This document shows, in pieces, positions 19,024 to 61,057 of a DNA stretch of 64,000 bases. Where the stretch lies: NCBI GenBank assembly GCA_033442325.1, contig JAWQFM010000036.1:376719-440718 (forward strand). Reading direction: 5' to 3'. Each line of letters begins with the position of its first letter. Position 1 is the stretch's first letter. The position numbers were made by a program, and so were the translations under genes. The stretch comes from Salpingoeca rosetta. Lineage: Eukaryota; Protista; Choanoflagellata. The notes below the pieces were generated by a model that worked only from the letters and a program-made list of their open reading frames with translations, did no database searches and was not told the DNA's origin.

Positions 19024-20573
19024 TTAACGTAACCCCGTGTCATCATCCCCACCACCACCACCACCACCACCACCACCACCACCACCACCACTGCGCCTGC
19101 CACGTTCACTGCTCTCACCAAAGGATGCGAGGGTGCGGTCGAGCTTGGCGTTGGCGTGCCTGTACAGCTCCATCTCGTGCCGCAACACGCCGTCCAACAC
19201 CTCCGCCCGCTGCGCTTCCGCCGGCACCGCGGACTTGTGCGCGTTCTGGTGCACGTGCGTGGTGCCTTCCACCAAGGCATCGGCCTGCTCGCGGCTCAGC
19301 CCCATGGTGAGCGCGAGCGCGCGGATCGTGTCTCCCATGCGTTCGGTCGTGCCGACAACGGCAAACGTGTCCAGGTTGTCCTTGGCCACGCGCAGCGCCA
19401 AGTCCATATCCTTGCGCACGGCCTTCACATCGTCGGGGTGCAGGTAGGTGGCCGGGAATGAGGGCAGAACGTCTGCATAGAACTGAAACTGGTACACGTG
19501 TGCAAGGTTATCCTGCTGCAGCCAGCGCACGAAGTCGTTGTTGTGCTCGGCCGGGTCCACGTGCCAGTGCTTGTTCCACATGGACCAACGATGCTCTAGC
19601 GGGTGCCTCAGCAATGCAATGGTGCGGAAGTTGTTGCACGGTAAGCTCAGGTACACGGATATCGAGTCGTGGCTCGTCACAAAGTCGCACGTGTCCCAGC
19701 GTGTCAGGTTGGCCACGAGCTTGTCTTGGGCTTGCTTATCAATATAGAATTGCCCAAAACAGTTGCCTTTCTTGGATCCCAGCCGCATCGAATCCCTGTC
19801 GAAGAATGGGCGGGAGAGAGCGTGACATTGGGGGAGAGCGGGGACATTGGGAGAGAGCGTGACAGCGAAACAACAGGGGCACAGAGTGAACTTGTGAGCA
19901 TGCACACGCCAATCGCGTCCAGCGAAGGTGGTCACAACAGATGGCTTCAAACAAAACACAACCCGATCCCATGTGGTGCACACACACACACACACACACA
20001 CACACACACACACACACACACACACACACACACACACACACACACACACACACAGCTGAGGTCATGAGCTGATCGAAGCACGCACGCAAGCCGCAGGCAA
20101 GCATGCCACCAACAAACCCGCACCAATCTCGCCCTCCTCACCCACACCCCGTCCGCAATCCCCCCCCCTTTGTCTTTGTCGTACGTGACGTAGTTTCCTG
20201 GACAAGGACGAGGTGTGCGATCGAGCGCTTTGTTTAGGACCTTGACGATACTTGCGTGAAGGCTTGTTCCACCGCTAAGCGGGAAGTGGACAAGAAAGAA
20301 AGGCGAGTTCTTGCAGGCGATCTTGGGGATCACGTGCGGTCGAAAGAAACACTGATCGCCCACGACAGCTGTCTTGGCATGCTCCAGCACGGCCTTGCCT
20401 ACTCCACCACCACCACCTCTGGACGACGCCGTGTACGTATCCACCACCAGCAAGAACACCACAAGCGCAGCGAACGCGCCAAGCAACCGAAGGCGACTCC
20501 TTATCCTCTTGTCGCCGCCACCTCTGCCGCTCCCTGACTGTTGCTGTTGCTGTTGCTGTTGTAGCGTCGTCAT
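19024..20573 (-). CDS. Type II membrane sulfotransferase-like protein, paralog A. Exons 20573-20185 and 19795-19024
   Basis: N-terminal TM (LLGAFAALVVFLLVV). 5'-PSB-like FLVHFPLSGGTSL, 3'-PB-like IALLRHPLEHRWSMW, FAVVGTTERM and HEMELYRHA. Phase-2 intron GTCAC|GTACGA...GACAG|G. Confidence 0.85.
19050..19419 (-). repeat. Copy 1 of a near-identical segment of about 350 bp, inverted relative to 38071-38420
   Basis: Encodes VRKDMDLALRVAKDNLDTFAVVGTTERM...ERxRRSGGG, with only a handful of nucleotide differences from the copy in paralog B. Confidence 0.9.
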
Positions 20574-21125
20574 CGTCCTTGCTGTTGTGGCTCCTCCTTC
20601 TCACTGCTGTTGTCGTGGCGAACAAAAAAGTAAAACTGAATTCAGTTGGATAGCACCGCAGCGACTGAATTCAGTGTGTACGTGTGTGTGTGTGTGTGTG
20701 TGTGTGTGTGTGTGCGTGTGTGCTTGTGTGTGTGTGTGTGTGTGTGTGTGTGTGTGTGTGTGTGTGTGTGTGTGTGTGTGTGTGTGTGTGTGTGTGTGTG
20801 TTTGTGTGTGTATGTGCGCGCATGTTTTGCGTTGCGTGAAAACGTCGCCTCTCCGGTCTCTCGGTTGTTGTCCACCAGCACACACACACACACATGTACG
20901 TCTGGCACTTGCTTGCACACCTTCGTTGAAGGCTCGTTTATATCCTACGAGAGATGTGACCTGCCTTGTCACAAGAGCGCTTGAGAAACTGTGTAACATC
21001 ATGTGACGTCAAGCAGTTGAACAAATGTACAAGCAAGAATAGATTACAGTAGTGCCATCACCCGAGCAAGCGGCTCCATCATGCACGTTGCTTTTGCTTT
21101 CCAACCCTTCCATGGCGATGTCATA

Positions 21126-58294: not shown

Positions 58295-58647
58295 TGTGCG
58301 CGCGCGTGTGTGTGTGTGTGTGTGTGTGTGTGTGTGTGTGTGTGTGTGTGTGTGTTTTGTGTGTGTGTGTGTGTGTGTGTGTGTGTGTGTGTGTGTATTC
58401 ATGTCGCTTTTACCTCAGCTCGTACGTTTTGGTTCATTATTAGCGGTTCAGTAGGGCTTCGGCCCACAATGTAACAACCACAGTCACGCTGAAGAACGCG
58501 AGCATGTGCTCACGACAAAGGATAACAAGAGATTGTGACTGTGAAGGCGTGGTGAAAAATAGAGAAGAGCGAAACGGCAGTCACATAGGAACACACAAAC
58601 ACACACAAACACACACACACACACATACACGCATACACACAGTGTCA

Positions 58648-61057
58648 TCACGGGCAGGCGCTGCCCTGGCACGGGTAGTATTGTCGCAGGCGGCGGTGCA
58701 TCTCTTGCTTGAGAGATGCGTTGGTGTTGGCGTGGTAGTAGATGTTGGTCAACTCATATGGATCCGCACTGAGGTCAAACAATTCGTACCAGTCTGGGTC
58801 GTCAAAGCATGTCTTCGTCAGCATCTGTGTGCTGTTGCACACGTACTGGTACTCGCCATACTTGTACTTGCCGAGCGCTGGGTCAACCACCGTGATGCCG
58901 ATGTATGTGTTGCTGTAGTCGTCAAGGGTGCGGTTGAAACCATCCTTGGGGTCGTCAGGCTGCCAGGGGCCTTGGTTGTAGTATTGCGTAAACTGCATGT
59001 TTCTAAATGCAGCTGGGTCGCTCGCAGATGGCCCACCGTGTTTCTCCAAGTGCCGCCGCGTTGCACCCGGGATGTCTGCAACGGCGCGCAAGGCATGTGT
59101 GCGCGTGACATGGTGATTGGGGGGGGGGGATGAAAAAGTGTGTGAACGCAGATCATTGCTCTCAAAACCTCACGTCTTCACACACACACACACACACACA
59201 CACACACACACACACACACACACACACACACACACACACACACACACACACACACACACACACACACAAAACACACACACACACACACACACACACACAC
59301 ACACACACACACACACACACACACACACACACACACACACACACACACACACACACACAGGCATACCCAACACACGCCTCTGCCCTACCTGCGGAGGCGT
59401 TGGTGAGGAGGACGGGAACAAGGGAACGACCGTCCATGACAGGGGGCGTGTCAATGTCAGCGAGGCCAAGCCACGTTGGCGCATAGTCTACGTTGGTACC
59501 AAGCACGGGGATGTGCTTGCCTGCAGGCACGCCCGGCCCATGCACAACAAGCGGGATGCGCAGCGAGTGCTCGTACAGCAGGAACTTGTTGCTGGGCAGG
59601 CGGTGGTTGCCGAGGTTGTACCCGTGGTCGCTCGACACGAACCAGTACGTGTTGTTGGCCACACCAAGGTCCTCCAACACAGACAAGAGCTGTGCATGCG
59701 CATCATCCACAGAGAGAAGGCACTGGCACCGCAGGCGCGCAAGCGCATCGATGGCGCGTGCTTCCTCCTCAACAAAGGGGGCCTGTTTGGAGATGAGCTC
59801 GTGGAAGAGCGGTGTGGAGTAGTTGAAGTTGGGCGTGCGCGGCGCAGTGACGTTCGGACACGCGTCTGCGTACTTGTCAGAGGGCGTCGACGGGATGTGG
59901 GGGCAGTGCGGGGCAAAGTAGAGGAAGAAAGGGCGACCATTGCTCGCTTTCCCCGTCACATTGTCACGTCGCAGCCACTCACTCGCCTTCTCAAGCAGCA
60001 GGTCTGTCGCGTACTCCTTGTCGCTCGCCTTGTACTTGAAGTCGGGGCTCTCGTTGTCCTGCCACGTACCGCCGTATCCAAGATGGGACCCTTGGAACCA
60101 CCGGTCGAACCCCTCCATGGTATTGAAGTTGCCCTTGCCAAATAGCGCAGTCTGAAACCCGCGCAGCATGCGCAGATATGTGCCGGCCGTCTGGTTCGTG
60201 TACAGCGAGCCGTTCACGTGGCCCGCGCCCGTGGGCAGCACCTTTGGCGGCGGCACCGCCGTTGCCGACTTGATGTTGTGGAAATAGCGGCCAGAGACGG
60301 TTTCGGACCGGCTGGGCGAGCAGATGGCTGTGTGGATGCGCCACTCCGACAGCAGCGCGCCCGTGTTCTGCAGCAGCCGCTTGGTGTGGCGCATGGGCAC
60401 GTCGCCCCACCCGCCAAGCAGGTAGTCCTGGTCATCCGTCAGGGAGAAGATGATGTTGGGGCAGTCCTTGCAGATGGGCCCGTGTGGCGGTGGTGGTACC
60501 CAGGGGCTCTTCCCACCGGTTGTTCCGCCAGACACGCACTCGCCCTCCGTTCCCGGTACCCGCTTCCCAAACAGATTACAGTGCGTCTCCTTCTCTTCCA
60601 CGATGGCAGCTTGGGAACGTGATGGCGTTGACGATGTTGGTCGTGCTGCCTCTGCATCGCCTGTTGTCCTCGTCGAAGTGTCGTCATCATCGGCGCTGTG
60701 GGTGTCGTTCACATCGTCAGTGCTGCTGCTGCTGCTGTTGTTGCTTCTGTTGTTGCTGGCGATACCGCTGCTGGTGGCCATGGTTGCGGATGAGGTTGTC
60801 CAGAACGTCCAGGCGTGGCATCCGTGTGTGGACGCACAAAGGGAGCAGCAGGCGGATGCATCTGCCAAGCCGTCCTTGCTTGCGATGCGCGCCTCTGGCG
60901 AATGCGTGCACGTCTTCTCTTGCAGATCCCCAGCCTTGCAGGCCACTGCATCTGATGCATCAGCAGCTGCTGCGGCTGCTGATGCTGCTGCTGCGCTAGC
61001 ATCGACAACAACAGCCAGCACAGCAGCCAGCACCACGGCTGTCAACCTCATCATCAT
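58648..61057 (-). CDS. Secreted PAN/Apple-domain formylglycine sulfatase (GNS/SULF-like). Exons 61057-59389 and 59075-58648
   Basis: Signal peptide MMMRLTAVVLAAVLAVVV; PAN-like ACCSLCASTHGCHAWTF..CNLF. Sulfatase motifs PNIIFSLTDDQD, ICSPSRSETVSGRYFHN (CxPxR), TALFGK, PFFLYFAPHCPH, NTYWFVSSDHGY..K..LYE..RIPL and ELFDLSADPYELTN. Phase-1 intron GCAG|GTAGGG...TGCAG|AC. Confidence 0.93.

Follow-up and report, generated by a model that had tools for sequence, protein, structure and literature searches.

Do neighbouring genes of the choanoflagellate Salpingoeca rosetta build and take apart one and the same glycan? The question is raised by positions 19024-61057 of a 64,000-nucleotide stretch of the 55.4-Mb, 68-contig genome assembly (contig C36:376719-440718; the whole stretch is referred to here as the window), where five genes for glycan-type proteins lie within 42 kb. 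An initial annotation proposed a full write/erase system, in which a GT32-GT6 glycosyltransferase fusion and two sulfotransferases make a sulfated alpha-galactose (alpha-Gal) or alpha-N-acetylgalactosamine (alpha-GalNAc) glycan that an alpha-GalNAcase (NAGA, family GH27) and a sulfatase remove. Rather than such a five-gene unit, we tentatively favour, at somewhat less than even confidence, a plausible functional core in which the GT32 fusion, two sulfotransferase-like (ST-like) paralogues, ST-A and ST-B, and NAGA act on a common glycan. We propose this core because the spacings between its genes are verified, both ST-like copies of the genome lie in the locus, their adjacencies are long-lived and the density of the neighbourhood is unique in our scans. 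The genes, their spacings and the loss of catalytic motifs are observed directly, whereas a glycan common to the GT32 domain, the ST-like proteins and NAGA is what we infer. The sulfatase is most likely a bystander, a degradative enzyme of the N-acetylglucosamine-6-sulfatase (GlcNAc-6-sulfatase) type. The neighbourhood as a whole is a lead and not a demonstrated system.

Two co-oriented gene pairs

Public gene calls and a reading of the open reading frames (ORFs) place ten genes in the interval. Five of the ten are of glycan type and assigned to the secretory pathway, as had been proposed, with a signal anchor or signal peptide read from the sequence of each product; the remaining five are unrelated genes interspersed among them, which the initial annotation had also conceded. 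The glycan genes are as follows.

20573-20185 and 19795-19024, minus strand: ST-A, a two-exon ST-like gene
26531-21126, minus strand: GT32-GT6 fusion, a single exon
36814-37340 and 37695-38439, plus strand: ST-B (PTSG_13158), a two-exon ST-like gene, 423 aa
38623-41266, plus strand: NAGA, family GH27, five exons, 463 aa, with Melibiase_2 and Melibiase_C domains
61057-58648, minus strand: sulfatase PTSG_11248, 698 aa, with Pfam domains Sulfatase and SGSH_C

The two tight spacings claimed at about 550 and 180 bp are accurate. The stop codon of the GT fusion and the ATG of ST-A downstream of it are separated by 552 bp, and the stop codon of ST-B and the ATG of NAGA by 183 bp, with both genes co-oriented in each pair. 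The sulfatase lies 17.4 kb from NAGA, beyond a 13-kb gene with DENN domains and an assembly gap, and the other four glycan genes are on uninterrupted sequence.

Divergence of the ST-like pair

ST-A and ST-B align over two conserved exons with the same GT/AG splice positions, and the public product of ST-B is spliced exactly as deduced from this alignment. The two are the sole copies found by a genome scan. Since they are paralogues, they represent one independent locus, such that the five glycan genes within 42 kb amount to four independent loci. Outside a conversion tract, synonymous divergence (dS) between the copies is 1.5-2.1, which is saturated, and the ratio of nonsynonymous to synonymous divergence (dN/dS) is 0.15-0.19, as expected of old inverted duplicates that are both under purifying selection. 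This age and selection indicate that each ST-like adjacency, with the GT fusion on one side and with NAGA on the other, is long-lived. The conversion tract comprises approximately the last 350 bp of the ST-B coding sequence (~38070-38420), where the copies are ~98% identical and dS falls to 0.06. Differing flanks and introns and a gradual decay of identity exclude an assembly artefact as the source of the pair, or of the identity tract within the GT32 domain that is described below.

ST-A and ST-B form head-to-head inverted repeats that still exchange sequence at their 3' ends, and the 16-kb segment between them carries the GT fusion together with the EF-hand, 447-aa and CBS genes. Recombination between the copies could invert this segment, which we offer as an idea and not as a result. 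Were it to invert, an ST-like copy would follow the GT gene in either orientation, and in one of them the GT fusion, ST-B and NAGA would stand as a contiguous, co-oriented trio. A word search limited to lengths of 141-448 aa returned no protein record for ST-A, which may be missing from the public annotation despite its intact splice sites and its dN/dS of 0.15-0.19.

A predicted sulfotransferase-like fold without the catalytic lysine

ST-A is predicted to adopt a sulfotransferase-like fold and to be anchored as a type-II membrane protein. For ST-A and NAGA the searches were performed exon by exon, whereas whole-protein searches used the database proteins of ST-B and the sulfatase. The Pfam sulfotransferase families (Sulfotransfer_1, _2 and _3) matched neither the exons at E <= 10 nor whole ST-B at E <= 1, and E values of 0.05-0.08 were reached by distant ST-like homologues only. 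A sequence search of the Protein Data Bank (PDB) with the ST-like exons returned nothing but glycine-linker noise. Since these sequence searches gave no match, the label of sulfotransferase rests on the predicted fold. The AlphaFold model of ST-B has a predicted local confidence (pLDDT) of 80-97 across most of residues 131-400, and its top Foldseek matches are all sulfotransferases. The Z scores against structures of the heparan sulfate 2-O- and 6-O-sulfotransferases HS2ST and HS6ST (PDB 4ndz, 3f5f and 5t03) are 15.6, 15.3 and 14.8 over 222-231 residues, with the 15.6 belonging to HS2ST and the 14.8 to HS6ST.

Two motifs that would contact the sulfate donor 3'-phosphoadenosine 5'-phosphosulfate (PAPS) can be located in both genes.

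20262-20288, minus strand (ST-A), and 37234-37260, plus strand (ST-B): PAPS-loop motif HFPLSGGTS
19582-19614, minus strand (ST-A), and 37876-37908, plus strand (ST-B): 3'-phosphate motif LLRHPLEHRWS

Like HS2ST and HS6ST, the ST-like proteins are type-II membrane proteins with the Arg...Ser motif that binds the 3'-phosphate. Unlike these enzymes, they have no significant match to a Pfam sulfotransferase family and have lost the lysine of the PAPS loop, which to our knowledge is present in all characterised sulfotransferases. In both ST-A and ST-B the position of the catalytic Lys in the loop (PKxGxT) is occupied by Leu. Searching 1.84 billion representative proteins in full with HMMER delimits a family of just five members, namely ST-B, one protein each from the sister choanoflagellate Microstomoeca roanoka and the amoebozoan Stygamoeba regulata, and two metagenomic proteins, with no Monosiga brevicollis member among the matches. 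Residues R239, P241 and S247 of the 3'-phosphate motif are invariant in all five members. The catalytic position is Ile, Ile and Val in the three next relatives, and Lys (PKTxGT) only in the most distant homologue. On the strength of the predicted model we regard ST-A and ST-B as a branch of the sulfotransferase fold that is conserved yet lacks the Lys, and for which the name sulfotransferase is not yet justified. The initial reading of two sulfotransferases is thus borne out in the predicted fold and the 3'-phosphate motif, but not in a Pfam match or in the catalytic Lys.

An ST-like homologue with 29% identity is encoded on ENA contig ERZ24794644, a dense, intron-free metagenomic contig of 45.9 kb. 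The same contig encodes the RNA polymerase subunit Rpb1, a PIF1 helicase and ankyrin proteins, and has the appearance of a giant virus.

An intact GT32 domain fused to a degenerate GT6-like domain

The fusion gene is one 5.4-kb exon; counted from its first Met, the product has 1801 aa and carries an N-terminal signal anchor. Its features are the following, where the two GT6 substitutions were identified by alignment to a paralogue on contig C10, to the metagenomic fusion P0129 and to ABO transferase.

~23900-24680, minus strand: GT32 core, with an intact DXD (SDTD) within 24255-24278
24130-24680, minus strand: gene-conversion tract in the GT32 core, 95-100% DNA identity to the C10 paralogue
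~21140-22470, minus strand: degenerate GT6-like domain, three segments collinear with ABO transferase
within 21798-21821, minus strand: DAA in place of the GT6 DXD
within 21348-21374, minus strand: HDDVT in place of HDDES

The GT32 domain (PF04488, Gly_transf_sug) scores 36.7 bits against a cut-off of 23, and the window, C10 and P0129 fusions all retain its SDTD. It resembles the retaining GT32 enzymes A4GALT (Gb3 synthase), A4GNT and yeast Och1 in its Pfam match above the cut-off and its intact DXD. It differs from them in being part of a multidomain fusion whose core has been homogenised with an unlinked paralogue. Some GT32 enzymes, such as A4GALT and Drosophila alpha4GT1, form alpha-GalNAc or alpha-Gal linkages.

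The GT6 half is broken up by long poly-Q, poly-N/S and acidic inserts. Against a cut-off of 25 bits, GT6 (PF03414, Glyco_transf_6) scores 20.8 bits for the whole protein and 16.2 bits in the genome scan, and reaches 28.7 bits over 48 residues only when the domain is excised. The paralogous fusion at C10:1360005-1365119 scores 127 bits for GT6 in the genome scan; in alignment with the human ABO transferase its DSD corresponds to DVD and its HDDES to HDES. The Glu of this HDES motif is the catalytic E303 of human GTA. The window GT6 domain shares only 24-29% protein identity with that of the C10 paralogue. The two fusions are 24-68% identical in protein sequence outside the conversion tract, whereas ~550 bp of the GT32 core retain 95-100% DNA identity between the unlinked copies.

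P0129, a metagenomic fusion of 1794 aa and an orthologue of the C10 copy, with which it shares 50% identity, carries the motifs DAD and HDDEG. It lies on ENA ERZ27287569 contig k119_348795 (7978 bp, 60% G+C) as an intronless fusion with canonical motifs, and its occurrence there means that the GT32-GT6 fusion exists outside S. rosetta. P0129 was the single match of a word search with the GT fusion, in which poly-Q words probably swamped other candidates, and the lack of further matches there is uninformative. An exact look-up of the inferred products of the window fusion and of the 936-aa gene listed further below found no record in the protein collection.

Three collinear segments of the window domain match ABO transferase; in contrast to the GT6 enzymes human ABO A/B, bovine alpha3GalT and BoGT6a, DAA replaces DXD, Val replaces the catalytic Glu and the domain is fused behind a GT32 domain. 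Nor is the window motif the metal-independent NXN variant known from Bacteroides BoGT6a. The GT6 half, which would have been the expected maker of ABO- or Forssman-type alpha-Gal/GalNAc linkages, has lost both catalytic hallmarks. The fusion reported initially is real and its GT32 domain intact, whereas its GT6 domain has neither the DXD nor the catalytic Glu.

NAGA and the sulfatase

The identification of the GH27 gene as an alpha-GalNAcase is upheld by the specificity motif in exon 4 of NAGA, which aligns to the same motif of chicken and human NAGA, and the presence of a sulfatase by its formylglycine motif.

40187-40207, plus strand: NAGA specificity motif SCSWPAY
within 60302-60322, minus strand: formylglycine motif CSPSR of sulfatase PTSG_11248

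The Ser/Ala pair admits the N-acetyl group and distinguishes NAGA from alpha-galactosidase A. Among solved structures, exon 4 matches chicken (1ktb) and human (3h53) NAGA best and alpha-galactosidase A less well, and the product has a signal peptide; assignment of the gene to the true NAGA type is supported on these sequence grounds. Compared with the lysosomal enzymes of human and chicken, it would be an ordinary, orthologue-grade enzyme in which nothing notable differs.

The sulfatase matches PF00884 at 124 bits, in addition to SGSH_C, and has a signal peptide. Its best solved relatives are 5g2v (an N-acetylglucosamine-6-sulfatase), 7ebp and 7p24 (mucin-desulfating), and its homologues are named N-acetylglucosamine-6-sulfatase. 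By sequence it is to be classed with the GlcNAc-6-sulfatases (GNS/Sulf, S1_11-like). It shares the Sulfatase and SGSH_C domains and CSPSR with human GNS, the Bacteroides enzyme 5g2v, the mucin-desulfating 7p24 and the extracellular Sulfs, and differs from them by an extra N-terminal PAN-like module. Among the named and solved relatives there is no sign of Gal or GalNAc sulfate as a substrate. The partnership on Gal/GalNAc sulfate that had been proposed for this enzyme is not supported by its nearest characterised relatives, which are GlcNAc-6-sulfatases. The N-terminal module is a Cys-rich, PAN/Apple-like region (60800-61057, minus strand) with a weak PAN_4 match, and PF14295 is found in several sulfatase homologues.

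Membership of the sulfatase in the neighbourhood rests on the scaffold join across the assembly gap at 50951-51459, through which no reading frame can be known. This gap lies outside all five glycan genes and inside the following gene.

41597-54863, minus strand: PTSG_11246, a DENN/RUN/PLAT gene of 1443 aa (public gene call), outside the glycan set

The annotated domains of PTSG_11246 are uDENN, DENN, dDENN, RUN and PLAT. Positions 35-167 of the DENN profile match at 52583-51658 and dDENN at 50280-50179, with the gap between them, and the join is supported because DENN and dDENN flank the gap in the correct order and on the correct strand. The gap is bordered by (TG)n on its left and (CAC/CCA)n on its right. 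PTSG_11246 also contains long coding runs of poly-Ser, poly-His and poly-Ile.

Glycan-gene density and the case for coincidence

The frequency of such a concentration was estimated from six-frame scans of the whole genome, in which exon matches were merged and the resulting locus counts are lower bounds.

Sulfatase: 20 loci genome-wide
GH27: 4 loci genome-wide, window NAGA being one of them
GT32/GT6: 7 loci genome-wide
Sulfotransferase or ST-like: 23 loci genome-wide, a lower bound

With these 54 loci in 55.4 Mb, the window holds the only 42-kb stretch with at least three, the next densest being a sulfatase pair on contig C18. Addition of 12 GT2 and 8 GH31 loci, for a total of 74 in six family groups, changes nothing within the 42 kb. 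A search for GT31 (PF01762) found no match in this genome or in the control genomes, a blank that is uninformative. In a Monte Carlo simulation with uniform placement, five of 54 loci fall together at p = 5e-6, and four of 53 at p = 5e-4 when the ST-like duplicates are collapsed into one; both values flatter the locus owing to the post hoc choice of families, the lower-bound scans and the variation in gene density that uniform placement ignores. The density exceeds the genome background for this narrow, post hoc class (p = 5e-4), but not for an assumed broader class of 300-500 genes (p 0.36-0.94).

Several results weigh against a functional core and, in part, for coincidence combined with local duplication, in which the glycan genes are independent of one another, NAGA and the sulfatase serve a bacterivore as ordinary enzymes of the lysosome or of digestion, and a nearby duplication of the ST-like gene created the second look-alike pair. 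The family classes were picked only once the locus had been seen, and the sulfotransferase list is a lower bound. The literature holds no usable CAZyme (carbohydrate-active enzyme) total for S. rosetta; if 300-500 glycan genes are assumed, four of them would fall within 42 kb somewhere in the genome with a p of 0.36-0.94. By rough arithmetic, the same range among the 11,629 genes of S. rosetta (PMC4054682) would give ~8-20 adjacent glycan pairs by chance, and the occurrence of two of them within 20 kb, with a duplicated member in common, is unusual without being extraordinary. Three to five unrelated genes are interspersed with the glycan genes. The Lys-to-Leu change of the ST-like proteins and the dead GT6 domain, moreover, weaken any simple enzymatic pathway.

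Nor was the linkage found elsewhere. Around the paralogous fusion on C10 there is no ST-like, GH27 or sulfatase gene; a cytochrome c heme lyase is among the products encoded beside it. On k119_348795 no ST-like sequence accompanies the metagenomic fusion, and the two ORFs downstream of it are unrelated; the virus-like contig ERZ24794644 has an ST-like gene with no GH27 neighbour. None of these three loci is a true orthologue of the window locus, which makes the comparison a weak test, and M. roanoka, the only close relative with an ST-like gene, is known from its transcriptome alone. Synteny between S. rosetta and Monosiga brevicollis is limited (PMC4054682). The three loci do not refute a conserved linkage.

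The published expression lists offer no support for a module either. The complete list of genes upregulated in thecate cells includes PTSG_11246 (DENN) and, modestly up, PTSG_11249 (DUF7869), with no other PTSG_1124x gene nor PTSG_13158, and the complete group-comparison list contains no PTSG_1124x gene and no PTSG_13158 (both PMC4054682). The placement of NAGA and the GT gene in the PTSG_1124x numbering is presumed from gene order. A text search of the literature found no paper naming these genes.

Against coincidence stand the status of the locus as the sole run of at least three among 74 loci in six family groups, the adjoining of each ST-like copy to a co-oriented glycan enzyme at 183 and 552 bp, and an arrangement that has persisted through a dS above 1.5. 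We consider coincidence a realistic explanation, only somewhat less likely than the functional core.

The full write/erase system and horizontal transfer

The system as initially conceived, in which the GT6/GT32 fusion writes, the ST-like proteins sulfate, and NAGA and the sulfatase erase a sulfated alpha-Gal/GalNAc glycan, is quite unlikely. The co-location of five genes, the specificity residues of NAGA and the general capacity of some GT32 enzymes to make alpha-GalNAc or alpha-Gal linkages all fit such a system. Its chemistry is nevertheless unsupported at three steps, as the GT6 domain has lost the DXD and the catalytic Glu, the ST-like proteins have lost the PAPS-loop Lys and the nearest characterised relatives of the sulfatase act on GlcNAc-6-sulfate. 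The position of the sulfatase, 17.4 kb from NAGA across the 13-kb DENN gene and the gap, also argues against it.

A shared horizontal origin of the GT fusion and the ST-like genes, with a giant virus as one conceivable donor, would suit the tiny, patchy ST-like family (S. rosetta, M. roanoka, Stygamoeba regulata and a metagenomic contig with Rpb1 and PIF1) and the intronless 5.4-kb fusion gene, but is very unlikely given a G+C content that matches the surroundings, host-type introns in the ST-like genes and NAGA, the age of the ST-like duplication and the lack of any viral hallmark gene in the window.

Other genes and features of the window

The window is identical letter for letter, gaps included, to scaffold GL832996.1 of GCA_000188695.1. 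The G+C content of the locus is ~55%, equal to that of its surroundings, and its introns are rich in (TG/CA)n repeats. Runs of N occupy 10176-10914, 50951-51459 and 63182-63281. The remaining genes of the interval are listed below.

26984-28792, minus strand: EF-hand protein, 160 aa (public gene call and Pfam)
29136-32822, plus strand: disordered protein, 447 aa (public gene call, ORF translation)
33160-36310, minus strand: CBS-pair protein, 356 aa (public gene call and Pfam)
55484-58294, plus strand: acidic low-complexity protein, 936 aa, intronless, with no family match

A glycan role, for instance as a transporter, was ruled out for the EF-hand, disordered, CBS-pair, DENN and acidic proteins. 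The 936-aa gene, flanked by the DENN gene and the sulfatase, contains long Asp/Glu runs. To the right of the sulfatase, the DUF7869 gene PTSG_11249 (732 aa; 61369-64000, minus strand) continues past the window edge. Among the families scanned, the next glycan-active gene on the contig is a GH31 gene, probably PTSG_11259, at C36:497326-498207, 57 kb to the right of the window.

A possible glycan module in a choanoflagellate

In the functional core that we favour, an old inverted duplication would have left one ST-like copy downstream of the GT gene and the other upstream of NAGA. The intact GT32 domain would add an alpha-linked sugar in the Golgi, and the GT6-like tail would be non-catalytic, with binding or scaffolding as its only remaining role, if any. 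The ST-like proteins may hold the 3'-phosphate of PAPS and perform a non-canonical sulfation, or may bind the glycan without sulfating it. Terminal alpha-GalNAc would then be trimmed by NAGA, either lysosomally or extracellularly. A bolder version, which we regard as unlikely, is that the Lys-less proteins of sulfotransferase fold define a new class of Golgi proteins that partner the GT32 fusion in a non-canonical or non-catalytic way and whose product is turned over by NAGA, with a possible inversion of the 16-kb segment in addition.

Functional gene clusters, such as the metabolic clusters of fungi and plants and the polysaccharide utilization loci of bacteria, likewise bring together non-homologous genes that serve one theme, lie close to one another and are in part co-oriented with short spacers. 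The S. rosetta locus differs from these clusters in that every second gene of the interval, on average, is unrelated and two of the five members are duplicates of each other.

Colony formation and mating in choanoflagellates are controlled by glycans of the cell surface and matrix. If the proposed core is real, it would give this lineage a rare example of functionally clustered genes, here for the synthesis and trimming of a single glycan, and offer a convenient knockout target. Two of its components are of interest on their own: a conserved family with a sulfotransferase fold minus the catalytic lysine, and a GT32-GT6 fusion in which the catalytic motifs of GT6 have been lost in one paralogue and kept in the other.

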